Assembly: GCA_051530055.1 (NCBI GenBank)
Contig: CM121342.1
Location: forward strand, 2,824,797 to 2,888,796
DNA from: Neoechinorhynchus agilis
Lineage: Eukaryota; Animalia; Acanthocephala
DNA: 64,000 bases
Direction of reading: 5' to 3'
Below the pieces are notes generated by a model. It saw only the letters and a program-made list of their open reading frames with translations. It had not been told where the DNA came from and ran no database searches. Both the position numbers and the translations under genes were made by a program. Below are positions 1 through 59,110 of the stretch, piece after piece; the first letter of the stretch is position 1; every line of letters starts with the position of its first letter.

Positions 1-3000
1 TGCACGAATGGCTCGTCGATTTGACAAAATTACCAGCTCCCGTTCCAGGAAAGATCGGCATAAACGTTATTTTGCAATCGAAATGTGTAAAATCATCGGA
101 AATACTTCTCGCCTTACCCGATGCTACAAGACTGCCACTTGTGGACATTCCTCTTACACTACTCGTCGAACTTTTGGGGCCTGACCTTTTAATCCGAGTA
201 TTTACATTAATTCTACTTGAACAAAAAGTCGTGGTTCAATCAAAGGACTACAACGCTCTCACAATGTCTGTTATTGGTCTCGTCCATCTTCTATATCCGC
301 TTCAATACATGTTTCCAGTGATCCCATTACTTCCGAAATCTTTACCGTCCTCAGAACAACTTCTATTGGCGCCTACCCCTTATCTCATTGGAGTTGGAGA
401 GGGATTCTTTAACTTGGGGCAAAGTATTAAACAACTGCCTCGAGATATATGGTTTGTGGAACTTGACAATGGAAAGGTTAGTATATATTGGAGAAATTTT
501 GTGCAAGCTAAAGATTTAGTTGACTTGTCTAAGTGACCAACCAGTACCTAATCTACCGGCAGAGCAAATGGGATTCCTCAAAACGAAATTCGATTCTGTT
601 CGTTAATTTTTTCTTATTGTTATCTTGACACAAAAATTTACAGGTTTATGGACAACTGAGAGACGCAAAGGATACCGATTCGCAGACATTGGACTCTCTG
701 GATGTAGAATTGAGATCGGCTATTGTTAAACTTTATGATTCCGATAATCTTTTACTGAACATCGGCGAACACGCCCGCACACTTCGTCTTTATCCTCGTC
801 CAGTTGTCGTCTTGCAGAAAGACAATTTTCTTAAATCGCGAATATTCAAGACGGAGTTCGTGAATTGGTTGGTCCAAACTCAAGCTATTGAGTATTATGC
901 CGAGTGGCTACTTTGTCCTAATGATATGGCATTTTCAAGAATCCAAACAGGTATGTGCCACTTTCCCAAATTAGGAATCTCCTTTTTTTAATCACTTTCT
1001 GATTTTTTACATTTTCGCTTTTATAAATGTTCCGTTTTTAATAAAATTTTAGAAATTCAGAATCTTGTATTGGCAGAATTATTTCTCACGTTAGAATCAA
1101 GACTTAATTTTGGTTTTATGTATAATTTAGGATCTCAATGTACTTAAATATTTAAATCGTTGCAGTGGTACTAACGAATAGTTTTGTTGGTTTTTCAAAT
1201 GACATTTACGATCCACAATGATTCGTCTTTGAATTTATGAAAGATACTTTATAAAAATTGTTTAATATATAAGTGGTTCCGTGTAAATTTCATTTTTTGT
1301 CTCTAGGCAGTAATCTTTTACCTCGAAAATAATCCCTCGTGTCGAGTTAGCTTAAATACAAATGGATTTAGTTCATCTTCCGACAAATTAAAAAATTCGT
1401 GAATGTATTTTTTCTCTCCAAAAACACAAAATCTAAGTCATAAATTTATTTTGGTACTCTCTTCAATGTTTTCCCTGACGTTTTACTGTATGATTTCTTA
1501 TCGTCTTCGTGTCAATTAAAAAGGGAAACATTCGCGCCTCTTTACATGTGCATTGAACTGATGAAAGGGAATTATACTTCATCGGATCAATCTACTTAAT
1601 AGTTAAATTAGAAATGCGGTGTTTCCTCGCGAAATATCTCGATTCAATAAAATATTCTCTAGTTAAAGATAAAATCCATGAGTATGTGGCGGTAGGGAAC
1701 GTCGTAAATACTTGCAAACAATAATTGACTGAAGAAGTCCATTTTGATTGGACGAAATATTTCAATTAAAGTCAGTCTTTGATATATAATTTTTTCCCAC
1801 CGCCACAAATATTTTATATCTGGGAGTCACTAAGGAATTTTTTTCTAAGTAACAAACAAGGTTTATAATTGGAAATTCATCGGTATTCGCACAAGAATTT
1901 TTCGTTTTATCAATATGAGTTCGATCGAATATCTACTGCGACTGAATTTGTCTTAAATGGATGAATTCTTTTTGTCAAAAATTCAATTTGACGATATTCA
2001 GGGATCGAGCTAGGGCTCATTTTTATCTTTAAACTTTTTAGAAACTCAGGATCCAAACGAAAATTCAAAACATTTTTAACAAATGTGCGCCAGTAATAAA
2101 CATATTGTCAATGTAGGTATTGGTGATCCAAGCCAAGTTGGGGATAAACCTTATTGGTACCAAGATGAACTCATTATATTTAACTTTACTCCAGGTTTCG
2201 GAGATTGTTCTAACCTGTCCATTTATGAACGCGGCTAGTAGTCCACAAATGGACAATATAAACCAAAAGTAAAACCGCAAAGTGGATTTGATGATGATAA
2301 GACATCTTTTTCATCCAAATCACTATCTTCATCGTCACTGAGCTCTTCTTCGTATATTTCATCCGGTGGTGTAGAATTAGAACGCAATAGCGATCTCGGA
2401 GGTGGAATAAAGGAAAGGTTGGCTCGCATACCAGCGAAGATTTCTAATATGATCGCGCTTCAGACAGGTTTGATTATTTATCTTTACACAAGAATCGAAA
2501 ATTCAATTTAGATTCGCCGAATTCAATCGCAAAAAAGCTTATGACAAAAAGAAAATCTGAATTGTTAGTTTCAAGTTTGAAATCAAAAATCGCATAAAAA
2601 TCACAGTCTATATTTTTGGAGAATTCGATGTAGATTAGGGAGGCCTAATCTCTTTGGTTTTTATTGTTTAGAATAAAATTATAAGCTAATCTGTAAAAAA
2701 CGTCGATTTGATTAATTAACAACCTTGATAAAGGCTTGATAATGTGCCTAAGTATCAGACTTAGCGATCGTTTGCTGAATTTTCTGCCGAGATTTTAATT
2801 TAAACCTAATTCAAATACTACGGAAAAGTTAAAGGTCAATACTTATCGTTTTTAGGAATGATCGCCAATTTCTGCGTTCCGCGGTCACGGATGCTTTGAA
2901 CGGCCAACGTCGCCTGAATTGGTTATCTGCTCGTCGATTCGCAGACTTGTGCCGAGATGAAAACAACCGGATTTACATTACAAGGCATATAAGCGATCAG

Positions 3001-5627
3001 CTCGAAAGGTCAACAACCACTCCCAGCGGCGACATGTCAATCCAAGTACTAAATAAAAAAATAGTTTCGATAGAATCTGCAAAATATATTTTAAAGCTAA
3101 TGGAAACACTTCTTCGTTCAATTGAAGGAACATCCGGTCTTGCTAGTCTAATGCTATCGCTTGAGATAATATGTAAATATTGTTTTCAAGAAAATAATCA
3201 AAGTCGTTCAATTTTCCTCTATGAAACTCTCACCGAGCAAGCAAAAGCGATTTTATGGTCGAGTAGTAACGTTTGGGAAAGTGCTTTCTATGATTATGTT
3301 GCTTACCACTTAAGTGGATCATAGAAGCGTCTAAGTGATCCACATAAGTGAGTATGAACGTGAAATCTGCGGACTTGATCAAGAGCCACTTGAATCTATG
3401 AAAAGGTTCGAATTACTCGAAGGTGTGGACAAAAAGCTGTTGGAGAATGAGGAAGATTCTCTTCTCACCGGTCTCTTAAGCAATTTAATTTCGTTTATGG
3501 TAATGATGAGAGTGAATAAAGACGACCTCCGAAGACGAGTGAGGCGTCTTATAGGCAGGACGCGTCTCGCCTTGAATTACAGTCAACTTCTATACGACCG
3601 CTTAGATCTTCAACTCATGAACAATAATTTAACTGATGATTCGAATCCAATCTATTCCGTTGGAACTCGGCATAAAAACTCCTTAATGACGAGAATATTC
3701 GCGATTTCGGATTCTAGAAAATGCAGATTGGATTTGGCACGAGAAAGCATCCTTATTTTCTTCATTGATGATCTCGATGACTCGTCAGTATTGAGTGATC
3801 GGATATGGTATGATCATCTCGTTAGTCTCAACTTTTCAAGTATGACGAAGACAATTTCAATTTGGTGGAGATGTATCGGGAGGATGGGAAATGCTGAAAT
3901 CAAAATGAGGGATATCATTGTTAAGAAGGTTGTATGTTTTGCGTTTTGACCTCAAAATCACGAACAACGGAACTTTTAATTTTATGAAATTTAGTTTCAA
4001 GTTTAAATTATTTTCTTGATCAATAAAAATTCACCTATAATGCTATTTAGCAAATTAATCGTCCTAGTATGAATGAGGAGAGTAAAAATGGAAGTTTCGC
4101 ACAAATTAAATACCACTTCTGAGTCTTTAGGAAAGCAATTTTGACGTTTTTCACTGCATCCAACATGCTACATTTTATAGCTCATTCTAAATGAATTTTC
4201 TATCGATATTCGATCGAGTAATATGCTACTTTCATTCCACAATAGTTTTTACATTTTATGCATAAATGTTGTTCTCAAATACTGGTCACATTTCAATTTT
4301 AATTTAATTTGACATTTGTACGACCTAAAGTTTATTTATTTGCCTAGCTTTCGCCGTTTTACGGCTTCAACTGGACAAATAAATAAACTTTAGGCCGTAT
4401 TTGTCAAATTTAAATTACAATTAAGAAATGCGCATGGAAAATCAAGCAGCGATATTCACGCTATCTTGTCACATTTGATAAAACTTTTTTTCTCGCTTGT
4501 GTTAGATCGATTTTCAAAATTAATACCATGTTGTAAAAACAAGCTTTGAAACCTAAAAAGTAAGTGATTTATGAGTGAATAAAAAAATTTCGAGTCATAA
4601 GTTCTTTATGGATGCTATAGTAGTAAAATTTATTTCAGTTATACAATATAGGGTTTTCTCCACGGCTTCGTCATTAAATCTTGAACCTATGAGTGGTTGA
4701 CCTTCGACAGGTCGTCTGGCCATCGTTTTTTCTTAAATTTGCATCTTTAGAAAATAATAAATACAAATTTGGCAAATCATTAAAAAATTACTCAGCATTT
4801 TGAATAAACGTACCAAAAGTATCCAAATGTAACAGCTATTGTGAAGCGACGGCAGTATTATTTCGAGCGGTAACAAACCCGGAAATTTTGAAATCCGTCA
4901 GTTTTCAAAATCGCGAATTAGGTCTCGAAATTTCAGTTTTAATGTCTATAAAGACATCGGAAGTTTAATGCACTCAACGTTTTTCAATTGATACTTTTTA
5001 GCGAACAAAATATCCGTTTTTTAACTCTACAAATTCCATAGGGAGCGGATGTTTATCATCAGATAAGATCCGCCCTGGACGAATACCACCAACGACAGAT
5101 GAAGAACGCCAAAGCCCCGATTATTATTCGCGAAGATGTGGAGGGTTTGCAATACAAACCCGAGGACATTCTTAAAAAGACAAAATATGACATTTACGAT
5201 CTGGAGAATGGATGGGAAGGTACAATTCAATTCTGGACAAACGGAATAGACATTGAATACGGCGTTGTTCATGCGGATGAAATCAGTTATCAGGTAAATT
5301 AGCTCCTCGATTTCATTTGATCACTCATAGACCGTTCATAAAATTTAGAAAAAGTTTGTTGATATTGGTGATATCGACAAGATTAGTCAAGTCGGCGATA
5401 ATATCCTGGTTATTGCTTTCTTCGACAAAGAATGCAGTTCCACTCGAAAACTGTCTTATCGAACCGATGAAGTAATTTCGTATACTCAAAGAATTCCTCA
5501 CATATATAATTTCGATTTTAAGGTAGAGGAAATCTGTTTTACGTTTATGTCAATATGTTCAATCAACGTTACAAGAAGCCATAGTCTTAAAAGTGAGACA
5601 TACGATCATGATGAAATAAATGAATAA
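1..5627 (+). CDS. MADD: MADD / DENN-domain Rab3 GEF (aex-3-like), 5' end outside window; multi-exon
   Basis: Motifs LLEQKVVVQSKDYNALTMSV, YMFPVIPLLP, EQLLLAPTPYLIG, RTLRLYPRPVV, TQAIEYYAEW, GDKPYWY, EEDSLLTGLLSNLISFM and EEICFT match MADD. Phase-consistent exons: <1-476, 520-597, 644-950, 2117-2467, 2512-2563, 2856-~3928, 5042-5293, 5349-5471, 5523-5627 (TAA). Two internal interruptions at 2211-2260 and 3304-3354 (see findings). Confidence 0.93.
2211..2260. other. TA-flanked hairpin insert E1 in MADD exon (48 nt removed with one TA)
   Basis: TA(2211-12), perfect 9-bp inverted repeat tgtccattt/aaatggaca, TA(2259-60). Carries two in-frame TAG codons. Removal gives ...GDCSKPKVKPQ... Confidence 0.55.
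3304..3354. other. TA-flanked hairpin insert E2 in MADD exon (49 nt removed with one TA)
   Basis: TA(3304-05), cacttaagtggatca/tgatccacataagtg (14/15 inverted repeat), TA(3353-54). Removal gives WESAFYDYVAYEREICGLDQEP. Confidence 0.65.
4287..4435. mobile_element. Foldback/MITE-like hairpin in MADD intron; half copy at 14861-14930
   Basis: Arm atttaatttgacatttgtacgacctaaagtttatttatttg pairs with caaataaataaactttaggccgtatttgtcaaatttaaat. The left arm and loop recur almost identically downstream of PFK. Confidence 0.75.
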
Positions 5628-6466
5628 TATTTTGGTATTTTGGCGCAATCTCCTTCGACGAACGTTAATCGATTTTATTCACTGACGTGGTTTGCACGAT
5701 TTTTTAAAAGTATTCAACGCCACATTCATTGCGCTTACAATGTTAAAATCGTCAACGACGAAAACATAAAATTTATTCTGTTTTAAAAGGTAAGCATTAA
5801 ATCAAATGTTTTGTACTGTGGACTCGCTTCTTTTTCGTAAGTTCGTTCATTTAATATACGGGCTTAACATTGATCTAAAAGAGCCACCAAATCGATTTTG
5901 TTGGTCAAATTTTATGCATTCGACAAATGAAAATATCGAAACTCATATTCGTTATTTGACCATTTTTCATTTGTTGGTTGTTCTTCATTTTCCATCATTA
6001 AACAATTCCTATCGAAAAGAAAAAATGCGATTCTCAGCAAAGATATAAATTTCAAATGTTAAAAAATTAGCTGTTTTTCTTTGCCCACTCTAAGCTAATA
6101 ATTTCATTAAAAATTATTAATAATATGAAAGATTATTTTATAAAAATTCCTTAAAACGTTTGCTTTAAGATGTGCCATTAAATATGCAAGATTTATACTA
6201 TTATTAAATATCACAACAGTTTTAAACGAGAGAAACTAAAACCGTATTTGTAAAATTAATATAAAAAAAGACGACGTATTACTTGTCAAAATTGAAGTTA
6301 TTCGCACTAATAATTCAAAGGTGTTTACAGCAACACCTAGTTTTCATCTTAGGAAAACATCGTTTGCTTTGATTTTGAACTCAAGTTTACGAAACATCAG
6401 CGGTATAAAAAGACGTTGACATTACACCTATCTTCATCTCACCTTAGCTACGACAAGTGAACTAAA

Positions 6467-8836
6467 ATGAAGCTGAGCCTGCTGATTGGACTATACGTTG
6501 TTCTCGTTGTTGCAATCGAAAGTCGTTCGCATAATAAACGACAAGATATTGATGACACTGCAGAAATTTTGGGATCCGTTAGTGAAGGTACGATTTAAAA
6601 TTAAACATGTACTGGAATTTTGATCTTTTTGAATAAATTTAGATGCCGTGGATAAAGCAGTAAAAGATAAAGTCAAAGAAAAGGCAATGGAATCAAAAGG
6701 TTAGTTGTTGCGAAATTAGAAGGTTATTTAGAATTTTTTATCCTCATCTAATTTGTTCGATATCAAGAAAAAGAAAGTAAATTGATAAAGGAGGCAAAGG
6801 AAGATATTGAAGGTGCCGAGGAAAAACGAAAAGGTTCCTCCAAATCTTGTTTTCATAAAGCTTTGCAATGTTTAAGATTTAGAGACCGCTCAAAAGTTGG
6901 AGAAAGGGATGAAAGAGACAAACGACGATGTGGATGATAAATTAAAAGGTTATTTAGAATTTTTCCACCCCATCTAATTTATTCGATGTCAAGGAAAAGA
7001 AAGTAAATTGAAAAAGGAGGCAGAGAAAGATATCGAAGGTGCCGAGGAAAAACGAAAAGGTTTCTCCAAATCTTGTTTTCATAAAGCTTTGCAATGTTTA
7101 AGATTTAGAGACCGCTCAAAAGTTGGAGAAAGGGATGAAAGAGACAAACGACGATGTGGATGATAAATTAAAAGGTTATTTAGAATTTTTCCTCCCCGTC
7201 TAATTTATTCGATGTCAAGGAAAAGAAAGTAAATTGAAAAAGGAGGCAGAGAAAGATATCGAAGGTGCCGAGGAAAAACGAAAAGGTTTCTCCAAATCTT
7301 GTTTTCATAAAGCTTTGCAATGTTTAAGATTTAGAGACCGCTCAAAAGTTGGAGAAAGGGATGAGAGAGACAAACGACGATGTGGAAGACAAATTAAAAG
7401 GTTATTTAGAATTTTTTATCCTCATCTAATTTATTCGATATCAAGAAAAAGAAAGTAAATTGAAAAAAGAGGCAGTGGAAGATATCGAAGGTGCCGAGGA
7501 AAAACGAAAAGGTTGCTCCAAATCTTGTTTTCATAATGCTTTGCAATGTTTAAGATTTAGAGACCGCTCAAAAGTTGGAGAAAATGAAAGAGATAGACGA
7601 CGATGTGGAAGACAAATTAAAAGGTTATTTAGAATTTTTTATCCTCATCTAATTTATTCGATATCAAGAAAAAGAAAGTAAATTGAAAAAGGAGGCAGTG
7701 GAAGATATCGAAATTGCCGAGGCTCATAAATTGAAGAAAGGGCTTCGCGCGCCGGATGAAGATAGTGAAGAAGAGCTGGAAGGTAGTTATAAATTGAGAA
7801 AATGTACATAATAAAAATAATTTTAGAAAGAATTGCAGAAGTTAAAAGGCGAAGAGAACGTATTAAAGGTATACTTTTTTAAATTTAACAGTACATAAAA
7901 AGCTTAGTTTAGAAAAGCAAAGTAAATTAACGATTGAAGGCATGGAGACGGAAGGTTTGGGTTTATTTTACTTATGATTTGAAAAATATAATTTCTGAAA
8001 CAGAAGAGTTGAAAAGATTGGAGAGTGAACGAAAAGAAGCTCAACTCCGTTTAAAAGTAGCAGAAGATAAGCGAAAAATATCCATTGATGATGATTTTAC
8101 TGATATTCAAAAAGAAATCGACGAGACCAAAGAGAAAATCGAGGATCTTGAGCGTAGGGAAAAGCAGTTAAAATCGCGATTGGATAGACTTCGTTCCCAG
8201 AATTTCGATGCCGAAGTAGTAGTGATTGATGGAAAGCGATATAAACTCGTTCATAGAGAAGGAGAGAACAGCGTGGGTGACCGCAACGAACAAGCGTGTC
8301 TGAATCAGAATGAATTTTTGAAGAGATTAAAAGCCGATGTTGACGATTACAAAAGACGGAAAAGTTTTTGTGATATTGATCGGTACCGACCAAGACCTGA
8401 ATTAAACTACGATATTTCCAAGGAAGGTATGGAGCCTGTCCATCGTTATCGAGTGAACGATAGACCATACGTTACGGTGAATGGACGACCATTGAAAAAA
8501 TCGGACGGGAAGGCGGTTAGAGTGTTAAAACGACCAATGGATATTAAGATTGAACGTGAGCCGATTCACGTCATTGTTGAAACTGTCAAAGGAAGATCGG
8601 GACGTAGACCGGTTGGAAATTGTAGAGATGAGAGACTGGTAAGGTGCAAGAAAAGTGCACCAAGACCGAAGATGGCTCCACACGGGCTTGATCCGGTGAT
8701 GGACGAATATTTTATGCGGAAAACTGGACGGCAGATTAGAATGCCGAATCCGCGAAAAGAGGAAGTCGTCTTGAAAATAATTCCAAAGACGATGAAAACC
8801 GTCAGTGACCGAATAAGAGAAATTGAGCGCCACTGA
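6467..8836 (+). CDS. Secreted E/K-rich helical-repeat protein (~577 aa, 14 exons), unknown family
   Basis: Signal peptide MKLSLLIGLYVVLVVAIES. All introns are phase 1 GT-AG. Exons 6467-6587, 6643-6699, 6768-6833, 6883-6948, 6994-7059, 7109-7174, 7220-7285, 7335-7400, 7446-7511, 7561-7623, 7669-7782, 7827-7868, 7913-7954, 8004-8836 total 1734 nt with an open frame. Confidence 0.85.
6720..7720 (+). repeat. ~226-bp tandem repeat (about 4.5 units); each unit is intron-exon A-intron-exon B
   Basis: Exon starts recur at 6768/6994/7220/7446 and 6883/7109/7335/7561, a period of 226. Confidence 0.95.
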
Positions 8837-9440
8837 TGCCGCTTTTTAGTGGTTTAGAAACCAATAAATTAATAGATGGCATTGTTTGGCACCACGCACA
8901 TTTAGAGTTCATCTTAAACTTGCAAGATTCAGTGACTTCATCAAAACTGTGCTCAAATTAAATGTTTACAGATGACAGCAGCGTTAAAGTTTAGCTTAAA
9001 TCTATCAAAAAGCAATTTAACCATTGCGGATAGATCACAGTGCTCATGATTGCTTCAGAATCTACTCCTCGCGTAAGACCGCATTTTCTCACAGAAGCAC
9101 AAGCGCTGTTTCCGCACAACCATAATGTGATGAATTATTCTGCATAGGAGTTGACGAGAATTCTTTATGGTGTGAGGATAAACGTCCGGGTGGTGTAAAT
9201 GTGAGAGCAGCAACTCGTACGACTTTATCTATTCTGGTACTACTCATCTGTTCGATAAGAAAACTCATGGCGTACTCATCTTCACGCTCACCTACGTATA
9301 TTAACAACTCATATAAACCACACAAGAGCGAGAGCTAAAGATTTGTTAGACAAAAACGAAACATCAATTTACACTTTCGCTTGAGTTTTTCGATAGTTGG
9401 CATAGATACGGGAGTTGCACGATTTCTAGATAAAAGGAAA

Positions 9441-10716
9441 ATGGACAAAGAACCTGAAAAACTTGGCGAAAATATGGCAACTCCTAAAAAGAAACTCTCA
9501 TTCGATAGCCGAGCTCTACAACAGGAAAGCGAAGTAAGTGGTGTATTTTAAATTGTGTTGTTGGCGACGAAAATGGTCCAATTCTACTTTATTGACACAT
9601 TTATCCGGCAGTTTTGGTTCCTAACTAGTTGCCATCTTAACACAAAGCATACAAGGAATTTTTCAAGGCGGTTGTTCGAAATTTAGCCATTAGTGTACAT
9701 AAAAACCGAATTTGTGTGCCTCAACCATTTCCAACTTTAAGCAATTGTTGGTTAAAATAAGCGTGAGTGTTTGAGATAACGTTGGCCATTTTGTGTATTT
9801 TTAGATAGAAATATTAAGTAATGGAGAAAAATATTTCTGTAAAATTCGCTTTTACACAGGTAAAATGAGAAAAAAGTACAGCATAACAAAAAAATTAAAA
9901 ATTGATTCCAGAAAAACGAGAAAATGTGACTTGAATATTCTAAATATTTTGCTTAAATGATTTAATTTAATATAGAGGAGCTGAGTTAAACAATTTGAAT
10001 CAAATAAGAACTTGGTGGCATTTTGTTTTTTAACAATAATTAATGGAAATCTGAGACTCGCATTTTATCCCTTTGAAACGAATCAATCCGAATTAATCAC
10101 CTTTGTCGAATAGAATGAAGAAATAATGACTGATTGCAACTGTACCGAAAGGGTCGTAGAAAGTCTAAACTTTTCTAAAGAATTCGAAGACCGATTCAGA
10201 AATGAAGCTGAACGTAATCGAGAGGAATGCCAAGATATTGAAGATATGATTTTTATAGACACTATTCCTCTAGTTGAAGAACAGACACAAGTAGGAAAAG
10301 ATTTTAATGCAGTAAAAAGGGGGAGCGAGACGGTATGAGTAAGCAACTTTTTTTGCATGAAATTTTGTGGGTATTTACAACGCTTAGGATCGGGACGTCA
10401 AGTTCTGCTGATTAAATGGACAAAGAGCACACTTGTTTTTATTCTTTTCTACATTTACGAAAATTCAAGATTTAAATTTAAAAAAAAAAGAATTTTTTTT
10501 AAACTTTTTTTGAATTTAAAATCCAGGCAGCTACGGGATCAATTATTTTTAAGTGGATCTTGAATATTTGTAGCTCAAAATTTGATTCCAATGAAGAAAT
10601 TTTTCCTTTTTGCGTAAATGTTTAAATCTAAAAATCAAACTATATTAATTGTTCGGCTTTTCGTTTTACTTCGATTTTAGCCTATTCTTTTTGTAGAAAC
10701 ATTTTACAGTAATTAA
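9441..10716 (+). CDS. Putative orphan multi-exon gene, 3' end uncertain
   Basis: Three phase-0 exons with canonical sites: 9441-9533 (MDKEPEK...), 10114-10332 (NEEIMTDCNC...), 10527-10613. Possible last exon 10681-10716. No recognised domain. Confidence 0.45.
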
Positions 10717-11960
10717 ATTTGACAAAATAATGTTGATGTTTCCAAAACCGATTTGAATGTTCAATCGAAAAATCCTTACTAGTCCACAATAACAAAATAG
10801 GAACTTCATAAGGTATTTTAAACGGTGAGAATAGTCTCCTCAATATTGACGACTTCCGATTGATTTTAATTTTTTTACGGTGTAACAATTGAAATTATTA
10901 AATCCGATATTTCGACATAATCTTGTTCCTTTAACAAAATTGTCTTCGGTGGATGACCAAGCTAAGTTTTTCTTTCGCGCAAAGACAAAATAGAAGAGAT
11001 GCCGTGAATCCGCGTTTTAGGCACGATGATGGATCGCTCTTTTTGTAAAATTTTGTTCGTCTTCCAAAGCTTTAATCTCGTGTTTCCACAAAATAACGCT
11101 CTTTCCCAAGGTTTAACAGAGTACAAAGTTCGTCAGTCTTTATTGATCTTCGTGCCTTCGCTTCCTTCCGCTCGACAAAATGTGAGACTCTTGCATAAGA
11201 TAATTCATGTAATGTAGAAAATGTTTTTCATTCTTATCTACCGCCACTCGAATGTGCCGATGGATCCGCGAAGCATTTTGCCGTCTTAATAATCCAAATG
11301 ACTGTCGTAATATCGTTTATCATATCCTTTATTGGAATAATTTTCTAATATTGAATCGAAAGTGTATTTTTCTCGTTAAAAATACGTTCAAGGTTGACTT
11401 TTATGTTTTGATTTGGAATCAACGATTTTTTTCACTTTAAACAAATTTAAAATTGCAACTATTCGCATATTTGTTGAATAAATGAAGATCACACTTTGAA
11501 TTAAAATTCGTTGCGACCATCAATTGTAATTGCGATTATATCTTAAAATAAGACAATTTGATAATTTATTTGGATTTTAGGGATTCTTTAATGCAGAACG
11601 GATTTAGTTCAAAAAGTCGAATCTATTATTCGTTAAGCATTCTACTTCTAAAAGTGCTTTTTTCTCTTATTGCTTAAGCGCATCTGAAATGCTTAGAGAA
11701 ATGCAAATGTTCGACTTTTGTCTGAGAAGTGTATTCCGGTTTGGCTGAAATTTCAAAATCTTACGCTCTCCATTTATTATTTCAAGAAAATCCGGCAAAC
11801 GCAATTTCCCCTTTTAAAAACCATTTTTATTGTCTGTCGAGCTTTTAATCTCCTCTGATATCCTCTCTAGGGCACTTCTCCTCCTTCTGTTGAACCAATA
11901 AGTTCGGAGTTTAAAGTCAGGCGTTCAATTTTTCAAAGACGCATTGGCTCGATTGCTTAC

Positions 11961-14743
11961 ATGGAAGGTCATGAAGACGCTCTTAGGAGGTTGATCGTTT
12001 CGAACAAGTACGAAGGCCACTCGCTTGGTGTATTCACGAGTGGAGGCGATGCTCAAGGTTTGTGAGTGAGACTCTTTTTCATCGCGGGGTTTAAGATATG
12101 ACCGAACAATCACTGAATCGCCACGATGCATCGTTCTCCAAGAACGTCCGGGCCTATAAAGGTCGCTATATCAAACGTGTGATCGGAGTATTCACAAGTG
12201 GAGGAGATGCACAAGGTGTGATGCTCTGCTCTTACAATATCTAACCAATTGCTTTGGTAAAGTTCTTTTGAAATTTTATTACGCTTTTTGTGTTTAGGGA
12301 TGAACTCTGCGTTGCGAGCAATCGCTCGCATGGGTATTTATCTCGGATGTAAAGTCTATTTTATCCACGAGGGTTACGAAGGAATGGTTGATGGAAGCGA
12401 TCAGCATTTCACTTTGGCTCAATGGGGTGATGTTAGTGGGATTATTGGTCTTGGTGGAACTAAAATAGGTTCTGCAAGATCAACTCGGTTTCGAACGAGA
12501 GAAGGACGTCTTTTGGCTGCTCATAATCTCATCAAACGAGGAATATCGAACATTGTTTGCATTGGAGGAGACGGCAGTTTGACTGGAGCTTACACATTTC
12601 GTGAAGAATGGCCTGATCTTCTTGCTGAGCTTCTAAGTAAAAATGAAATTAATAAAGAAGAAGCGGAAACTTGTCGATGTCTCAAGGTCGTCGGTCTGGT
12701 TGGTTCGATAGATAATGATTTCTGTGGAACTGATATGACAATCGGTGCTGATTCTGCTCTTCATCGAATATTCGAAGCTATGAACGCGATCTCGACGACG
12801 GGATCAAGTCATATGCGTTGTTTTGTCCTTGAAGTAATGGGGAGACGGTGTGGATATCTTGCATTGATGACCGCTATTGGATCTGACGCTGATTGGTTGT
12901 TTATTCCTGAAGCTCCGGCTGCTGATAACTGGCAAGAGGCGATGTGTGCCAAGCTATTGGTCACTCGAGAGATGGGGCAGCGTTTAAACATAATCATCGT
13001 GGCTGAAGGAGCCACTGATATGAAAGGTCAGCCAATCACGTCTAATATGATAAAGGATATTGTGGTTTCACGATGTGGATTCGACACACGAGTAACTGTT
13101 CTTGGTCATGTCCAACGAGGAGGAGACATATCGGCGTTTGATCGCATCTTGGCAACGAGAATGGGAGCAGAGGCCGTCATTGCTTTAGCGCAAAGGTGAT
13201 CGTAGAGTTTTAGGGGTCTACCGTTTGGAACCGAAAATAGAAACACAATCATTAATAGAGAAATTTCAATCTCATGCGAAGCCCGTGATTTTAAAGAGGT
13301 TGTTTGCATTTGAGCTATGTCGACTTTTTCTCTCAAACCATCTATTTCAATTTGATCAGAGCGTTTTTATAAGACGAATTCACGTTCACCATTGCCATAA
13401 TGGAATCATCAGATGAATCAGCACCGGTGATAATCTCATTAGCAGGAAACCAAGCGGTCAGAGTTCCTCTGACGGTATGTGTTGAGAAGACCAAAGCAGC
13501 TGCAAAAGCCATGGATGATCATAACTATGAACGAGCAGTTCTTCTCCGGGGTCACACGTTCCAGCGGAACTTGAACACTTACTTGGAACTGAGTAAACTG
13601 CATCCCAAATTGGTTGAACTTCCCAAACATGTATTCACGATCGGCGTTTTGAACATCGGTGCCCCGGCATGTGGAGTAAACGCAGCAGTTCGATCGATTG
13701 TGAGACACGTACTTTGGAAAGGTCATCGTGTCCTTTTGGTATATGATGGATGGGTCGGATTCTTAAATGGAACTGTAAAAGAAGCCGAGTGGATGAATGT
13801 GCATGGATGGAGTGGTGTAGGCGGATCAAAACTAGGAACTCAAAAGGTTGACGCAAAACACGCAGGTCTTGAAGATATCGCAAACCAAATCAAGAAATTT
13901 AAAATCAATGCATTAATAATCGTCGGCGGTTTTGAAGGATATTTAAGTGTTATCCAATTGTATGAGAACCGAGCTCTTCATCCAGAATTCTGTATTCCGG
14001 TTCTATTGGTCCCGGCGACGATCAGTAACAATATTCCCGGAACGGATTTCTCAGTAGGCACGGACACGGCACTTAATGAGATCATTGTGACTTGTGACAA
14101 GATGAAACAATCTGCTCAGGGAAGCAAACGGCGAATTTTTATTGTTGAAACAATGGGTGGAAACTGTGGATATTTGGCTACATTGGCTGGTTTGGCTTCT
14201 GGAGCTGATCAAGCTTATATTAAAGAGGAACCTTACAATATTTTTGATATCGTCTCAGACGCCGATCATCTAAAGAAGAAAATGCTGAGTGATATGAAAC
14301 GCGGAATCGTACTAAGAAGTGAACTATCGAATCCAAATTTTAATACTGATTTTATTCTCCGGCTCTTTCAGGAACATGGTCGTGGAACGTTTAGTGCTCG
14401 CGCTAACATCCTCGGACATGCGCAACAAGGAGGTTGCCCTTCTCCATTTGACAGATCATTTGCTTTTCGATTGGGCGCTAAAGCCTCCAATATCGTCCTG
14501 GAAATGCTTAATAACAATAAAGACGATCAGGGACGTGCCGTCGTGACTGATCCATGTAGTTGCGGTGTTGTTGGGCTTACCAAACGAACTATTGACGTCA
14601 CGCCGGTTGAAGTTCTTAAGGAATGTACCGATTTCAATCTTAGACTTTCTTATGATCCATGGTGGCTGAAACTCAGACCTCTTCTAAGAATATTAGCCAA
14701 GCATGAAAGCGTCTATGTAGCCGATATTAACGAGAGTGGTTAA
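11961..14743 (+). CDS. PFK: ATP-dependent 6-phosphofructokinase, eukaryotic two-domain type (~776/783 aa)
   Basis: [91 protein letters not shown]. Exon 1a 11961-12057 or 1b 12098-12215, then 12298-13187 and 13400-14743. Confidence 0.97.
12098..12215 (+). CDS. PFK: Alternative first exon 1b of PFK ([10 protein letters not shown]...[12 protein letters not shown])
   Basis: Own ATG, open frame, phase-1 donor gtgtga. Duplicates the TSGGDAQ motif of exon 1a with only third-position differences. Confidence 0.8.
13186..13399. other. TA-flanked insert E3 with terminal inverted repeats in PFK (212 nt removed with one TA)
   Basis: TA(13186-87), gcaaaggtgatcgt / acgttcaccattgc (12/14 inverted repeat), TA(13398-99). 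Removal gives [33 protein letters not shown]. Confidence 0.7.
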
Positions 14744-15239
14744 ACATTTAGTTCACCACTACTTGAATAAAATGATTAGAAATTTAATAGTACATGGTAA
14801 CGATAAATACTAATCGGTATAATAGAGTGAATCAATGCTTGATTTTCTAGGCGCATGTCTTAATTTGACATTTGTACGACCTAGAGTTTATTTATTTGCC
14901 TAGCTTTCGCCGTTTTACGGCTTCAACTGGGCGATCTAAAATGTGCGAGATGGGGAGACAAACATTTCAACTTCGATTGAGGTTACTGATTCGTGATTTT
15001 TTATATATATATCTGTATACTTTGATTTATCATAAAGTGTAGATCGAATGGCTGTAAAGCTTTATTCGTAAAACACAATTTCATATAACATATTCGATTG
15101 ATCCAAAGATACATGGGTCCAATTCTTTTTAAGTAACAAATAAACGTGTTATTATTATAACTTAAAGAGTATATAAAACGATTTATTCCCGTCACACTAT
15201 TTTCAATACTTTTTTCGCTGTCATTTTAAATTTTTAAAA

Positions 15240-18228: not shown

Positions 18229-19470
18229 ATGTCTTGGATTACTATGTTATTGTCTTCGGACGAAAAGAGACTTTCCTTTCTTATAGTTTCGCCACCTCGC
18301 CGGATTTACTAATCTATATTTCCGCGATATTTCACCTCTCGGATAATTCTCCGGCATTTCGTCTCAAGGTTTGTGATGGCTATTTAGAAAAACTTAAAAG
18401 CAATCACAAGCCTTGAGAAGAAATGTCGGAGAATTATCCGAGAGGTGAAATATCTGGGAAATAAATCAAGGAATCCGGGGGTTGGCGAAACTAAGAAAAT
18501 GAAAAAGTATGTCTTGGATTATTGTTTTCGGACGAAAATAGACTTTCTTTTTTGGTAGTTTCGCCACCTCGCCGGATTTACTAATCTATATTTCCCCGAT
18601 ATTTCACCTCTCGGAACATTCTCCGGCATTTCCTCTCAAGGTTTGTGATGGCTATTTAGAAAAACTTAAAAGCAATCACAAGCCTTGAGAAGAAATGTCG
18701 GAGAATTATCCGAGAGGTGAAATATCTGGGAAATAAATCAAGGAATCCGGGGATTGGCGAAACTAAGAAAATGAAAAAGTATGTCTTGGATTATTGTTTT
18801 CGGACGAAAAGAGACTTTCCTTTCTTATAGTTTCGCCACCCCGCCGGATTTGCTAATCTACATTTCTCCGATAATTCACCTCTCGGATAATTCTCCGACA
18901 TTTCTTCTCAAGGTTTGTGATGGCTATTTAGAAAAACTTAAAAGCAATCACAAACCTTGAGAAGAAATGTCGGAGAATTATCCGAGAGGTGAAATATCGG
19001 GGAAATAAATCAAGGAATCCGGGGGTTGGCGAAACTAAGAAAATGAAAAAGTATGTCTTGGATTATTGTTTTCGGACGAAAAGAGACTTTCTTTTTTGGT
19101 AGTTTCGCCACCTCGCCGGATTTACTAATCTATATTTCCCCGATAATTCACCTCTCGGATAATTCTCCGACATTTCTTCTCAAGGTTTGTGATGGCTATT
19201 TAGAAAAACTTAAAAGCAATCACAAGCCTTGAGAAGAAATGTCGGAGAATTATCCGAGAGGTGAAATATCTGGGAAATAAATCAAGGAATCCGGGGTTGG
19301 CGAAACTAAGAAAATGAAAAAGTATGTCTTGGATTATTGTTTTCGGACGAAAAGAAACTTTCTTTTTTGGTAGTTTCGCCACCTCGCCGGATTTACTAAT
19401 CTACATTTCTCCGATAATTCTCCGACATTTCTTCTCAAGGTTTGTGATTGCTTTTAGGTTTTTCTAAATA
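18229..19470. repeat. Tandem array of ~272-bp foldback units (about 4.6 copies)
   Basis: Unit starts at 18229, 18509, 18781, 19053, 19324. Each unit contains a ~60-bp near-perfect stem around a ~25-nt loop. Confidence 0.92.
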
Positions 19471-20397: not shown

Positions 20398-21925
20398 GAT
20401 TTTCAACAAAAATATGAAGAATCATTTCACTTTATGATCTAATCGCGGCTTCTAACATTTAATGCTGACTCTCACCATAGCAAATAAAGTCATGCAACAA
20501 ACTCTGCAAACTGGCCCCGTTTTTATGAGTATTTATAAAAGAAATGCATTTTAAAAAGGAATACGTAATTTTAAAAAATGAAATGGAAACTACTTAATGA
20601 TCACTTAAAGATTTTCATCCTTTTGCGCCCAAGTTTTTTGTAGTGCTTTTTCGTTTTCTGTCAATATTGTTCATCACCTTAAATGTTAATACGCTTTTGA
20701 ATTAGCTGTTGATTTGCTATAAATAAATTTTTATGTGGTGTAAATTTGATTTGTATACAAAGATGAGTTGGAATGAATGTTATTAAATATATAATCTTAA
20801 CCGCAGCCCAAAAATTGGTTCAATTAGAACGACAGGACGCCTTTCTGGAAAGGCTGCATTTTGGAGTCAAACTTTTGACAGTTAGATAAGCGCTGAGTAC
20901 ATTTGTTCAAAACACGAAGATTATTCGAAATATACATTCTCATTTCACCTAAATAATTTACTTTGTGAATGAGAATTCGTACTTTAAAAGCTATTTTTCG
21001 TTGATTCATTATGAGCGGGAGATTTTGCTTTGTTCAAAAATTTTGCTTGTAGGATTTATACTTAATCTGTAACTAAGAGAATTAACAGGCGGAAATTCGG
21101 AACGTGTGCTTTTTCTATGGGTAAAAGAAATTAAATTCGAGATATTAAAATTGTTCATGTTTAACAGCAATTCTTAATTTCTAAAGTTAAATTATTTCAT
21201 TTGAAACAATTTCTTCACTTGAAGTTTGTCTTAAATTTATTATTCATTGAGTCATTCAAAGACAGCATTATGCGACATTCGGAAAATTTCTACGAGATTC
21301 CAAGGAGCAGAATTTATACTTTAATCATGTCGAGAAAATCCATCGGGATGGTAAATTTTGACTTGTGGTGAATATACTCGCCCGGTTAAAAATAATTTTA
21401 TTATACTGAAATATTTCGAAAGAGGAAATCTCGCCTTCTCAATCATCTAAAAAGGTTTTTGGTTATTGCCATTTCTATGTTTTATCTAATAGGCTCAAGT
21501 TGAGAGGTTTGCCACTTCCAAGGTTTGGGGACAGAATGATTTTAACCGGAATTATCTTCGCCATAAGTCAAAATTTATACTTTTATAACTAAGAACGTTT
21601 GTATTTGTTTTAATCGTGCACTTAGAACTCGTATCTTTTTATTTAATTTCATTGCTTACTTTTAACACTAAAAAATTACACCAATGTTATTCTATTGATA
21701 ATTCGTGAGCTTAAATGATTATGTATGAATAACACTACGTTGCTAAATGGTGTTTCGATCAGCCACTTTAATTGTTTCTTTATAGGAATGTTTTCAAAAT
21801 TGTAAAAGGATTGAAATATCCAAATGCATTAGATCGACTGCTGGTTTCAGAATACCAGATAATTTTTTGTATAAAGTGCCGAAATAAAAGCAACCAATCA
21901 AAAAATATGACCGTTAACAATTTAT

Positions 21926-24925
21926 CTATTGCTTACGACTCAAAAGATCACAATACTCTTGAACACTCATCGTTGCGTTGTACATTGATCCTGGCAACAA
22001 TAAACCTATTTTATTAATAGGCAATTCGAGGATCAGATGAAGATTATGAAAGTCTTTTAACTAACCAGCAAATGCTGCATTGACGAGATTCGCGAATACC
22101 GCACATCCAAGCGACCTTATGGCATTTTTTTGAATCGTATTGGCTCGTTTAGGGGCCAATGCTATAAGAACTGAACATAAAAGACCTAAGGAGGCGATGT
22201 TGGCGAATCCGCATAATGCGTAGACCATTATTTTGAAAGATCGTTCCTAAAGGAAATTTGTTTAGGAATACGTTCTGTGTGCCTTACGTCGAATATCATT
22301 GGTTGATCTCCTCTATAAGTGCTTCGATTACAAACGTAACCGTAAAAGGTTCCTCCAGCGATCATGCTATCTTTATGCTTTTTAATCTTTCCTAGATCGA
22401 TAAATGCGAGAAACTATAGGATGGCATTGCAAATCAATGGAAATTATGTTTGCTTGTACCTCATTCATTACAGTTTTTGTACCGAATAACTGTCCGGCTA
22501 CAACGCAATCTTGTCGGTCGATCCCGATCAGCCACATGAATGGGTAAAACACATAACCGAGAAGCACCTTTGAATCAGCGGAAAATTAGAAATTGTGAAA
22601 GTTGCTCTTCAAAAATACTTCATAAAGTGCAGTTGCTAATGTTATTTTCAGAAAATCAGGATTAGCGTAACGATGAATTAATGTAACTTTGAAATTGAAC
22701 CCAAAAATGAAACTAATTTCAACTTACACTGAAAGTGAGGTTTTTAGCAATCACAAGATTGAAAAACCATCCAACAAACTGATCAATTAGATGCAATATA
22801 GACGTTGAAACGATTAGCGTCGCAATTATAGATCCACAGATTTTTAACGAAGCCACTGAACCGCTGAGTATCGATTTTATTATTGACGAGTCATCGTCGC
22901 TGAAATATCAAGGAAGTTAATTTGGTGTTTGAAAATTGGAAAAATACCAAAGACGGTATGTCTTGACGATCTCTTTTGTTGCTCTGCTTACATGGATCTC
23001 TGGATGGGAAATTTTTGATATTAGATAGCTGATAGGCGCCACTAATACGCAAGCTCCCAAAAGCTCTTCAAGTGGAACCTTAAACAGGAGAGGTATAATA
23101 AATGAGGATTTAAATGCATTTAAGAACTTACATTTAGTTTTGTATAAGCTACCAAGATGGAACCGGCCACGGATGCCATACCAGCAGACATTAAAACGGT
23201 TAATTCAGACGCCGTCATTTGCTCCAAAAATGGTTTGACTGCAAGTGGTACTTCTGTCTAGTTGTTTAGATTTTGAAAGCAAATATAGTTAATCGGGGAT
23301 GGTTGAACGCTGAATAGCAGTGATCGTTGATAAACAAAATATGTATGAGGCGTATGAATAATAATAAAAACGAAATTATTTAATATTTAACCTTAAAGTT
23401 TTATAAATTTTATTTACAAAGTTTAAAATAACCGCTCTTGAGCACTAAATATCGATAGGAATTTTTATGAATTTTTAAAAGATGTTTATCTCTATTCTTT
23501 ATAGATAAAAACCGCTAATCAGCCACTTGAAGCTGCTTAGTGTCAAAACTCAATTTCTGTCAGGATGAATCTGAGGAACAAGAAATTTGATTTCATAAGT
23601 ATGTATTTCTTTTTAGGATTGAACTTGCTCATTACGCGAAGGCCATTCATACCATTCCAAGTAAAGTATTCGCTGCTATCGAAATTGATTCAGTTGGACT
23701 AGCACCGATCAGGTTATCAAGAATCATAGACAAAAAATTGATAAACATTTGCATAAGTCCCAAATGGTAGCAAAGATTGATTATACCAGCTAGGAATATT
23801 ATTGAACTTGTTATCTAAAAAATCCAGTGATTTTGTCCAGCAGTTTCTCGTCATAAAAACGTACTTCGATCGCCATTGAATTCCATCCGGCATTATCAGG
23901 CAGCAAGTATGATGAATTTACTAGAGTGAAATTTACTGGAAACTTGTAGAGCGATCCATAAACTGCAGCCATTCCATGGTCGGTTGAACTCAAGAATAGC
24001 TTGACCTTATCGCTCAAATATTTAATGATAAATTGACCTGTTGACGTCTTCAGAATAACCAGAGAAATCGCAACTTCGAAAACCAATGAAGATGTCACTA
24101 TTTTCCAATTGACCTTCAAGCTAATCGTTTAATAGAAGAAAGTTTCAATATCTTACCATAAAAGGTGTTTTTGAGCTGACAAAGACAATTCCAAGCATTA
24201 CGATAATTCCAAGAAAACCCTGATACCAATTATGGCTCCTTTCACGTGCCATAAAAAATATAAGAGCCATCAGAATGCCAACACTTGCTGCCACCCTTGT
24301 CCATCTTAGCAATTAGGGAGTATAATTTGAAAATAAGATCTAAGACTCACCTGACGACGAAGTTAAATCTTTTTTTATTTTTACTTTTGTCAAATTTTGG
24401 TTTAACGCGGCGAAACAGTTTATTTAGGATATCTAACTTTAATATAAGAATTATCAATATGATGATAGTCATAATAAATAGATCTAAACGTTAGAATAAA
24501 CCAAAACATGTTATATTATTAAGCAAATACCTTTTCCTTGCGAATGTCCAAATGACTCCGACATGGCGAACCCGAAATAAACTAAATAGGCTACCGCCAG
24601 GAGCCACTTAAAGGCATTCTTTAAGTGACGCTAAACATCATCCAAAAATAACGGAAAAAATATTTCTCCAGCGCGTTTAGAACCTTTATAGGCGATTTCT
24701 TTACTTTTTCCTTATATCCATTGAAGTAAAGTGCCATCTTCTCAATAAATTTATTATGTTTATGTGGCAATCTTTCAAAAGCAATTCCATCGTCGTCTTC
24801 ATAAATGTCAAGTTCCATTTCGAAATTGTAAGACCCTCTTACGTTATCCGTTTCGAGTTGGAGACTAAATACACTTTTTATTTTCTGAGAATAAAATAGT
24901 TAAAAAAATCGCCTAACCTTTCCAT
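21926..24925 (-). CDS. SLC28: Concentrative nucleoside transporter (SLC28/CNT family), multi-exon
   Basis: Spliced minus-strand exons give VNWKIV, YHLGLMQ, GASPTESISIAAN, TEVPLAVKPFL, SAGMASVAGS, YVFYPFMWLIGI, VMNE, YALCGFANIASLG, all with canonical GT-AG introns. The start at 24925 is tentative. Confidence 0.92.
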
Positions 24926-31409: not shown

Positions 31410-32135
31410 TCGTCATTGAAAAGCTGATAAAATCAACCAATGAGCGTACGAGCGGTTTGCTCCGCTTTTATCTACATTTCTAGTTGTATAATCAAGAAAC
31501 TTGCGTGCTGCGAATTATTTTATCGTCAATAGAGATGTTCAGCAGTACAGTTTAAAGCAATCATTACGTTTATTTTATTCTTTGGCTGATGTTACGGCAA
31601 AATGGACGGATAAATCTGTTTTTTTATTGAAAGTTTCATAGTCGCGAATGAATTTTGATTCAAAGTAAGATCGATCAGTGGAAGATCACATTATTGTCCA
31701 TTGCTAAGAAAAAGATTTCGGTCGTTTTTTGACTTTATAGAAAATTGTTCACAAATCTATCGACCTTATTTTTTAAAGAAATAAGATAGGTCGACGAAAA
31801 GCGATGTTGTATTTAAATGTATAAATTTCCCTGGTGATGAATCGTACTTGTTTAATATCATTCAATTTTAATCAAGGTCCTCTTAAATACAATGGGTTTT
31901 TGTCGTTATTGGACTTTCCACCGTTGTCGAAAATTAACTGTTAGTAAACTTTTCAAACTTTCAACGGTTGCTTTCTTCTCAAAAATATGAATTTTCGACG
32001 TATTAACCTTCTTTTTTTCGAAACCTATTATTAGTCGTCGTATGCACTTTTGAAAAACTTTGGAATCGTTTTTAGAATCTAATAACCAAGAATTAGGCGT
32101 TTACTTTTTGGCTCCTAATTTTTTTGCCAGTTTAA
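31410..32135 (+). repeat. ~730-bp block duplicated in direct orientation at ~36085-36790
   Basis: attgaaaagctgataaaatcaaccaatgagc... through ...tttagaatctaataacca is co-linear in both places with scattered substitutions. Confidence 0.9.
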
Positions 32136-32559
32136 ACCTTAAAACAATTAAGTTCTTTACGTAACATTCAGGCGGATTGCATTTGGCTAATTTCAAAGCG
32201 AGAATCGATGTTTTATTCGTTGAATGCCGAATAAGTTTAAAGCGTAAATACTTACCGCTATGCCAAATTCGACATTTTGGGTTTTATGGACCTTTTCTTC
32301 CCATTTCCACCAGCAAATAAAATAGCACAACAGTGCAATATTCTTCGTCCGTTTAACGATCCAAAATTAATAGTGAAATCTTTTAGTTTATCAATGCTGC
32401 ACTTGGAGACGCCGAACTCTTTAATTTTTTCCCAAAGATATTGAATCGCCAGTTGAGCTTTTCATCTCGATTGCTTCGGTTCCTAGTGAAGATCCTACTT
32501 TCATTCGCGATTCCATTCCAGGTACTGATTCACCGGACGACACGATCGGATAATTTTCA

Positions 32560-33080
32560 GGTTCTGAATAAAGTTTACAATTTTAACAACAATAGACATA
32601 ACATTTTGCAGGTTATCGTCTTTAAGTTTTTATACAAAGCTTGCTGGTGAATAATACAATGATAAGCTCGGAAAATCGTAATTGGCTACCAGCAACACAA
32701 TCTGGCCTTTTCTCCGTCCAACCATTATTGACCGATAAGAACTTTCTCATATAGTTATCATTGCTTAATAAAAATTCCTTCGGTGTCTTTTATATATATC
32801 GTTGCCGGCCAGCAATTGTTTTTTAAATTTATGTTTCAAGTAAATTCCAAACCAAATTACGAGTTTTTCTGTGTCGATGAATTCCTTTAATCGAAAAGCA
32901 ACTGCTCAATTATGTTCCGCGATACAATATCAAAAGGTAATGCTACGGCCCGATGAAATAGCTGAATATTTGAGCCCGCCACCATTCGAGCTCTCACATT
33001 TTTTTTGCTCAGTTGGTTGATTAAAACTCTGAATTTTGTTTTCTGAGAGCGCATTAACCAGCTAGACCTAAAGATCAAAC
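32560..33080 (-). mobile_element. hAT (Buster/SPIN-like) transposase fragment
   Basis: MVGRRKG, HCIIHQQAL and VMSIVVKIVNFI, with frameshifts. Confidence 0.75.
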
Positions 33081-33637
33081 AAATACAAAAAAAAGATCAT
33101 ATTCATAGGATTACGAAAAATCAAGAATTTTGCGAAAAATAGAACTAAAAAAGATTTGAAAAACTTAAAAATCCGTTAGCTCTGCGGCAATTTTAAATCA
33201 GTCCGCAAGTAAATAACACTGGTCAACTGCATGGATTAGAATTTTTTATTGCCGTGGATAATGGAACTTCAGAAGATTGAGATTATGAGAGATGTATTAA
33301 ACGATTATTTAGAAGTATAAATGGCCACTGAAAATTCTCTAAATAAGCTTTAAGTAATGAATTTCGTACAAATGAAGTCGATTTACTCTAGACTTTCATT
33401 ATGTTAAGCGTAAAGATTAATATTTGCTGCATAAATAAGCTTGGTTCAAAGTAAATACATGCCAAGATGTCTGCTTTTACTTACCGAATTTTAATAAAAA
33501 TCGAGGCACGGTTCCAATGCCCACTTCACTTTCAATAGAATTATAAGTAAAACTTTATAATTTTTTTAAAACAAAAGCACAAATAAAGCATTTATAACGT
33601 TTTTTGTAATAAGACCATAATCGTCGGCTTTTCAACA

Positions 33638-49739: not shown

Positions 49740-59110
<9,371 letters not shown>

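Follow-up and report, generated by a model that had tools for sequence, protein, structure and literature searches.

Three short inserts, each bounded by the dinucleotide TA and ending in inverted repeats, interrupt two conserved genes, MADD and the 6-phosphofructokinase gene PFK, in a window of 64,000 nt of contig CM121342.1 (assembly GCA_051530055.1, Neoechinorhynchus agilis). Exact deletion of each insert together with one TA closes the reading frame, and at the two sites within reach of homology it recreates the orthologous protein. The explanation that we rank first, with a probability of roughly 0.38, is that these are very small miniature inverted-repeat transposable elements (MITEs) in exons that would be removed precisely from RNA as non-canonical introns.

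Anatomy of the inserts

The preliminary description of this DNA had reported three frame breaks with the order TA, inverted repeat, TA at 2211-2260, 3304-3354 and 13186-13399, and we located all three at these positions. The host genes and the inserts are:

1-5627, plus strand: MADD (MAP-kinase activating death domain / DENN), identified by Pfam DENN and Death_MADD and by tblastn against MADD orthologues
11940-14743, plus strand: PFK (ATP-dependent 6-phosphofructokinase, eukaryotic double-domain type), identified by PDB matches (E = 1e-155 and 1e-181) and by orthologue search
2211-2258, plus strand: insert 1, in MADD, 48 nt including one TA; second TA at 2259-2260
3304-3352, plus strand: insert 2, in MADD, 49 nt including one TA; second TA at 3353-3354
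13186-13397, plus strand: insert 3, in PFK, 212 nt including one TA; second TA at 13398-13399

At each site a TA is followed, not more than 3 nt further in, by a terminal inverted repeat (TIR), a second TA closes the insert, and the reading frame of MADD or PFK is broken. Insert 1 (first TA at 2211-2212) carries the hairpin arms TGTCCATTT (2216-2224) and AAATGGACA (2247-2255). The frame is identical on both sides of it and its loop holds two in-frame TAG stops; subtraction of 48 nt closes the open reading frame (ORF). Insert 2 (first TA at 3304-3305) is an almost perfect foldback in which 14/15 bases of the arms 3307-3321 and 3336-3350 are matched and the two TAs pair with each other at the base of the stem. 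The +1 shift of frame that it causes disappears once 49 nt are taken out. Insert 3 (first TA at 13186-13187) has imperfect TIRs, GCAAAGGTGATCGT (13190-13203) and ACGTTCACCATTGC (13382-13395), matched at 12/14 positions, and its interior is not palindromic; with its 212 nt deleted the PFK frame is again open. The deletions of 48, 49 and 212 nt agree with the earlier claim that loss of the insert plus one TA restores the frame each time. The ends of inserts 1 to 3 read TAACCTGT/TATATTGT, TACCACTT/TACTCACT and TAGCGCAA/TATGGCAA, respectively.

With the boundaries fixed, a TIR of at least 12/14 bases at each insert had a P of about 1e-4 against shuffled inserts, and it was seen in 0/265-317 of the other equally spaced TA..TA pairs of the window. 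With TA on both sides and TIRs of this quality, all three inserts show the anatomy of a TA-duplicating TIR element. The predicted RNA fold of insert 1 reached -13.4 kcal/mol (z = -2.9) and that of insert 2 -22.3 kcal/mol (z = -7.2), whereas the stability of insert 3 as a whole was unexceptional (z about 0), only its termini pairing in both the minimum-free-energy and the centroid structures. The description of the inserts as hairpins therefore stands for inserts 1 and 2 and not for insert 3, which is a TIR element. Counted in the register that splits both TAs (T|A...T|A), the predicted stems begin 0-4 nt from the junctions.

We searched for further hairpins and further insert copies in 77 kb, about 0.5% of one chromosome. 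TA-flanked hairpins of 30-80 nt formed 13 clusters, compared with 2.3 in dinucleotide shuffles, an excess of about 5-fold. One of them resembles inserts 1 and 2 in architecture and lies about 630 nt past the SKP1 stop (20299), outside the listed ORFs:

20931-20981, no strand assigned: further TA-flanked hairpin, 49-nt TA-to-TA spacing, fold z = -3.1

No further split conserved gene was found. This last result covers the window and 19.7 kb added upstream by exact-protein matching for a larger census of split genes; the added part is gene-poor and holds NDUFB8 and the intact N-terminus of MADD.

Exact deletion recreates the orthologous proteins at sites 2 and 3

The start of MADD lies about 960 nt before the window, and apart from the inserts the gene is intact; the long flanking ORFs, of 142 and 204 aa, have no other lesion. 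At site 2 the N-terminal piece ends ...FYDYVA and the C-terminal piece resumes EREICG, and in 5/5 full-length orthologues a single residue stands between them. The retained TA supplies a Tyr codon at this place, and the product of exact deletion, ...FYDYVA-Y-EREICG..., aligns without a gap to each of these orthologues. The last two codons ahead of the insert encode a conserved Val-Ala, found in 4/5 aligned orthologues, the fifth having Leu-Ala.

PFK consists of uninterrupted ORFs of 303 and 447 codons, again with no other lesion, and aligns end to end with solved PFK structures. Its N-terminal piece ends ...AVIAL, the Leu corresponding to L324 of rabbit muscle PFK, and the Met that opens the C-terminal piece corresponds to L325. 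Removal of the insert gives ...AVIAL|MESSDES..., and the residues flanking this join are adjacent in 118/118 PFK orthologues; the structure chains of rabbit PFKM and yeast PFK are gapless here too. At both sites the boundaries of the TA repeat are set independently by the register of the orthologues, and on either side codon conservation in the exons reaches the TA.

Insert 1 lies in an unconserved MADD linker past the conserved GDKPYWY motif, beyond which the three orthologues tested align no further. Because the linker is unconserved, the exact boundaries of insert 1 are beyond the reach of homology. That precise removal recreates the orthologous protein thus holds for sites 2 and 3, where no other operation yields the orthologous register, and does not extend to site 1.

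A TA on each side, at boundaries fixed independently, combined with TIRs is what cut-and-paste elements that duplicate TA (Tc1/mariner-Stowaway style) characteristically leave. By these sequence features the inserts look like exonic insertions of TA-duplicating TIR mini-MITEs, with candidate membership of such a family.

Both genes had been described as otherwise intact, and the clean flanking ORFs agree. An intact insert-free paralogue would have spoken against removal of the inserts, and for PFK none appeared: the protein collection that we searched, which includes the gene calls of GCA_051530055.1 itself, holds no PFK between 55% and 100% identity, and hence no insert-free paralogue was seen. 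Among the matches of the PFK C-terminal part there was no transcript-derived PFK of the species; the sole match at 100% is the genome's own call, the next stands at 55%, and the cluster of this part has one member. The database calls for MADD terminate at stops inside inserts 1 and 2 and restart after insert 2, and that for the C-terminal part of PFK restarts after insert 3; splitting of the calls at the inserts reflects the behaviour of the predictor, not biology.

At the 5′ end of PFK two alternative coding exons, at about 11950-12057 and about 12130-12215, end in the same protein letters and are each followed by a GT donor. Both apparently join the acceptor at 12298; they resemble duplicated exons of mutually exclusive use, or else alternative starts.

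Proposed removal from RNA, and broken alleles as a rival

In the scheme that we rank first, very small non-autonomous DNA elements with TIRs and TA targets (mini-MITEs or foldbacks in the style of Tc1/mariner and Stowaway) would have inserted independently, three times, into coding exons, twice in MADD and once in PFK, each insertion duplicating TA. Pairing of the inverted-repeat termini would hold the two exon ends side by side, and the pre-mRNA would lose the insert exactly at the duplicated TA, so that the host genes stay functional. The product would be a transposon-derived non-GT/AG 'hairpin' intron next to ordinary GT-AG splicing. Transposition rather than repair as the origin of the inserts, their removal as such, its action on RNA and the placing of the junction at the TA are all inferred.

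The contrary possibility is that nothing is removed: the inserts would be young, gene-breaking insertions on the assembled haplotype, in a heterozygous or decaying copy, with an insert-free allele or paralogue, missing from the assembly or from the data searched, supplying the function. The surroundings are rich in transposable elements (TEs) and satellites whose copies are 99-99.8% identical, as recent transposition would leave them, and only one haplotype of one region is in view. Automatic gene prediction stops short at each insert, and the flanking codons are perfectly preserved, as very recent events predict. On the other hand, three unrelated nulls in two adjacent, apparently single-copy and lesion-free essential genes within 11 kb would be an untenable load for a sexual animal, and the inserts are therefore probably removed; the improbability of such a triple null is our main reason for believing in removal. 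The search for a PFK paralogue came back empty, and the TIRs are already imperfect, so that the insertions are not brand new. We regard broken alleles as unlikely.

Precedents for RNA-level removal in Fritillaria, Amoebophrya and euglenids count in favour of mini-MITE introns, and several observations count against them. No terminal motif and no pair of end dinucleotides is common to the three inserts in any register: for inserts 1 to 3 in turn the ends are TA..TA, TA..AG and TA..CA, or AA..AT, AC..GT and AG..AT, or AC..TA, CC..TA and GC..TA. No polypyrimidine tract is visible by eye upstream of the 3′ ends at sites 1 and 2. No further copy of any of the three inserts was found in the 77 kb searched, and in view of this and of the missing common terminal motif the family membership is only putative. 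The other introns are GT-AG and thus give no sign of a global shift of the spliceosome as in Fritillaria. TE copies nearby are very young (about 99.7% identity), which makes recent, unpurged insertions conceivable. Finally, the sequence in view amounts to about 84 kb of one chromosome and one haplotype.

Canonical splice sites near the inserts

Every register that the TAs permit gives non-GT/AG ends, with the sole exception of the 3′ AG of insert 2 in register 0. Ordinary splicing would therefore have to use sites beside the TAs. We listed all GT-AG paths that lie within 30 nt of a site and leave the frame open, with shuffled inserts as controls:

Site 1: 4 single GT-AG paths, including 2195-2269; P of at least one in a shuffled insert, 1.0
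Site 2: 2 single GT-AG paths, including 3298-3352; P of at least one in a shuffled insert, 0.73
Site 3: 0 single GT-AG paths, 26 two-intron combinations; P of at least one in a shuffled insert, 0.79

Such cryptic sites could remove exonic mini-MITEs as ordinary short introns at the price of small changes in protein: 75 nt and 9 codons lost at site 1 (2195-2269), 55 nt and Val-Ala lost at site 2 (3298-3352), and at site 3 two introns, 13196-13240 and 13285-13373, with a 44-nt micro-exon between them and about 26 residues added. Stop-free in-frame paths do exist, and the 55 nt at site 2 fit the local short introns (about 50-68 nt). By inspection, the donors GTTGCT (about 7511) and GTTTCT (about 7070) are apparently used in the neighbouring tandem-exon gene, where AAG acceptors likewise occur, and splice donors of this genome look degenerate or weak. 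With weak donors and a typical intron size, cryptic canonical splicing stays a serious rival at sites 1 and 2.

The existence of these paths is in itself uninformative either way at sites 1 and 2, since they are as common in shuffled inserts. The individual paths fare worse. That of 3298-3352 removes the conserved Val-Ala, and its GAG acceptor lies inside a strong stem of -21 kcal/mol; at site 3 no single intron serves, and the two-intron paths insert non-homologous residues at a point where the alignment from yeast to mammals is gapless. That the conserved exon codons run as far as the TA on each side also argues against displaced splice sites. An ordinary U2-type GT-AG intron thus remains an option for site 1, would cost two conserved residues at site 2 and has no single solution at site 3. 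The canonical alternatives had been called the poorer ones, and we came to the same view: we think cryptic splicing improbable as the explanation for all the inserts, though it is the rival to which we give most credit.

Elsewhere in MADD and PFK, and in the gene at 6.4-8.8 kb, all introns inspected have GT...AG ends as read by eye; for MADD and PFK this agrees with the earlier description.

Possible excision from DNA, assembly artefacts and rejected candidates

A precise cut could also be made in DNA. The inserts would then be germline segments recognised by nothing more than a pair of TAs and a hairpin at the termini, in the manner of the internal eliminated sequences (IESs) of Paramecium, and would be cut from somatic DNA at the TA by a domesticated transposase followed by end-joining. 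The TA boundaries, the ORF restored by in-silico excision to one TA, the short lengths and the lack of common sequence all fit, and we know of no other system that marks intragenic inserts by TA alone. However, 0/6 ends match the Paramecium consensus TAYAGYNR, and an assembly of bulk animal tissue is expected to be mostly somatic and hence insert-free; on these two grounds DNA excision is disfavoured. No piggyBac-like gene was found among the ORFs scanned against Pfam, which cover part of the region, and we know of no animal in which DNA is eliminated precisely from within genes. We consider both the definition of the inserts by TA and hairpin as germline segments and their excision from somatic DNA very unlikely.

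Spurious small palindromic insertions made in sequencing or assembly are the least likely explanation of all. A poly-C run of 130 nt (52291-52420) reveals at least one odd stretch of assembly, but TA duplications with imperfect TIRs and unique loops, three times over, are not what an artefact would yield, and we know of no platform error that creates unique foldbacks of 48-212 nt.

Other candidates were set aside. Gene fission with separately translated pieces was judged unlikely: PFK would be split inside the fold of its N-terminal half and MADD would lose the conserved YEREICGLDQEPLE. The C-terminal part of PFK does have an ATG directly after the TA. Translational bypassing, known from T4 gene 60 and mitochondrial byps, was rejected on mismatched take-off and landing codons (TCT/TAT at site 1, TTA/ATA at site 3); by inspection, site 2 alone has synonymous ones (TAC and TAT), and the gap at site 3 is 212 nt, compared with about 50 nt for bypassing. 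Stop-codon reassignment was rejected since sites 2 and 3 require frameshifts, and U12-type introns since no such motifs were seen. As an origin of the hairpins, templated snap-back repair found no convincing match between insert and flank when these were compared by eye.

Comparison with known systems

Stowaway and Tc1/mariner MITEs usually measure 80-500 bp and have many copies per family, and maize Ds/dSpm alleles are spliced via cryptic sites. With such MITEs the inserts have in common the TA target-site duplication (TSD), TIRs, the lack of coding capacity and the genic insertion; they differ in that the interiors of 46-47 nt are smaller than in any MITE known to us and that no more copies were found in 77 kb.

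The IESs of Paramecium are bounded by TA, mostly tens of bp long, and excised from DNA by PiggyMac in a separate somatic nucleus. Likenesses are TA at both ends, one TA left with the ORF restored (in silico in our case), short length and unrelated sequences. The differences are the end consensus, which the inserts do not have, and the host, animals being without nuclear dimorphism.

Among animals the closest case is that of the fritillariid tunicates. In Fritillaria borealis about 95% of introns are non-canonical, with a TSD-derived exon motif TAC, repeat families and a duplicated U2AF (bioRxiv 10.1101/2025.08.15.670264; PMC11282704). Like the MITE-derived introns of Fritillariidae, the inserts stand in coding sequence of an animal, bear TIRs and a TSD at the exon borders, are placed in a lineage-specific way and have no GT-AG ends; site 3, moreover, reads AG..AT when counted in the T|A register, one of the two commonest classes in Fritillaria. 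Unlike there, introns here are mostly GT-AG, the repeat is TA, and the sequence seen offers three unrelated single copies, two of them mere foldbacks of 48-49 nt. The hosts differ as well, a tunicate on one side and an animal that groups with Syndermata on the other, and splicing is here putative. Judged as Fritillaria-type introns, the inserts therefore show TIRs and TSDs at borders with non-GT/AG ends, but not the setting of a majority of non-canonical introns.

Nonconventional introns of euglenids carry a CAG/CTG stem, typically at +4..+6 / -8..-6, and are excised as circles, after conventional splicing, by a mechanism that is unknown (PMC11282704, PMC3935182, PMC12501133). Variable pyrimidine|purine borders (T|A in our case), complementary termini that join the ends, TSD-like repeats, the lack of a polypyrimidine tract and the coexistence of conventional GT-AG introns are common to both; the predicted folds of the inserts indeed combine such borders with terminal pairing that juxtaposes the ends. 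The CAG/CTG stem was not seen here, and the euglenid host is a protist rather than an animal. Within RNA-level removal of mini-MITEs, a euglenid-style excision defined by structure and independent of splice-site dinucleotides would be one special form, which we hold to be rather improbable taken by itself.

The introner elements of Amoebophrya have inverted repeats of 8-20 nt and variable direct repeats of 3-5 nt; more than 60% of introns are non-canonical and the U1 small nuclear RNA was undetected (PMC7789003). Inverted repeats at the intron ends, short direct repeats over the borders, the capacity to form hairpins and inconsistent terminal dinucleotides recur in the inserts, but in Amoebophrya the direct repeats are not TA and the host is a dinoflagellate. 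In the literature on rotifers or acanthocephalans we found nothing comparable.

Other repeats and genes of the region

The window is AT-rich (32-44% GC) and eukaryotic, and its introns are short, about 50-70 nt. Its genes are MADD, a tandem-exon coiled-coil gene, PFK, SKP1, a concentrative nucleoside transporter (CNT) and RPS6, among many transposon fragments and satellites; a scan of the window against Rfam gave 0 matches. The best named matches of RPS6 are from Pomphorhynchus and Brachionus (69%), and in the RPS6 tree it groups with that of the acanthocephalan Pomphorhynchus laevis (support 98/95), for which reason we read the host as probably a syndermatan animal, of the rotifer/acanthocephalan lineage, with long branches as a caveat. 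Two of the features concerned are:

4300-4417, no strand assigned: palindromic MITE, 118 nt, with TA-starting termini, inside a MADD intron
40891-41646, minus strand: RPS6, intronless

A partial copy of this MITE, 71 nt long and 98.6% identical, lies downstream of PFK at 14860-14930; with two copies at hand, this genome has a family of palindromic non-autonomous elements that end in TA. The transposon-related coding content of the window, as seen by a Pfam scan of part of the ORFs, consists of reverse transcriptase (RT) and integrase fragments only.

A 5.65-kb segment at 31936-37585 has an inverted copy 6.3-11.9 kb upstream of the window with 99.75% identity. It carries a repetitive ORF of 574 aa without a Pfam match, and the two copies bracket the MADD-PFK-SKP1-CNT cluster; other repeat pieces (RT and integrase fragments) are common to both flanks and 98-99.7% identical. 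A TA-flanked perfect hairpin of 33 nt, TAACCAAAAAATAAGCGTTTATTTTTTGGCTTA, is found three times, at 36743-36775 and at sites 5.4 and 11.1 kb upstream of the window, each time inside the large repeats, and has the look of a terminator-like motif or of the end of an element.

A satellite at 49753-59109 (9.4 kb) comprises about 74 copies of a 125-126-nt unit, and embedded in it is the pure C run mentioned above, maybe an assembly oddity. Directly upstream of RPS6, 15 copies of a 151-nt unit with 97% matches occupy 41706-43946. Just upstream of SKP1, an array at 18247-19420 has a period of 272 nt and 4.3 copies, each unit being a long palindrome with 71-nt arms, 87-93% complementary, around a 5-nt spacer. 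The gene at 6460-8836 combines a signal-peptide-like start, a 226-nt unit repeated 4.5 times in tandem, in which a pair of short Lys/Glu-rich exons goes with two introns of about 50-65 nt, and a unique C-terminal ORF of 300 aa without a Pfam match. On the minus strand at 61561-63782 stand three tandem paralogues of 103-116 aa, Cys-rich and probably secreted, with near-identical C-terminal halves, no Pfam match and no recorded gene call.

A fourth candidate insert, in the nucleoside transporter (minus strand, about 24,630), was rejected. Its apparent 23-nt frame break and the CACTTAAAG/CTTTAAGTG hairpin are fully accounted for by an ordinary GT-AG intron of 77 nt, ...CCTATAAAG|GTTCTA...CCTTTAAG|TGGCTC, read by eye against a transporter sequence. 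On the same comparison, the split of this gene into two database calls reduces to an ordinary intron, ...NTLLGM|TEVPLAVKPF.... The hairpin, with 9 bp perfectly paired, lies in the region of the first coding exon (24531-24816, minus strand), and its right arm overlaps the acceptor.

Implications

Should the inserts prove to be unremoved null alleles, what is left would be a stretch of DNA in which MITEs have recently been highly active. If they are removed, annotation of this genome and its relatives would under-call intact genes, since predictors break such genes apart, as happened in the database calls. If the inserts were IES-like, programmed DNA elimination inside genes would be documented for the first time in a metazoan. 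If instead they are removed from RNA at the TA pair, this would be the second independent animal lineage, after the fritillariid tunicates, that neutralises exonic transposons as non-GT/AG introns. It would do so where other introns are still canonical, that is, at an early stage at which the spliceosome or another activity tolerates structure-defined inserts, and it would provide a tractable example for the old problem of intron origin.

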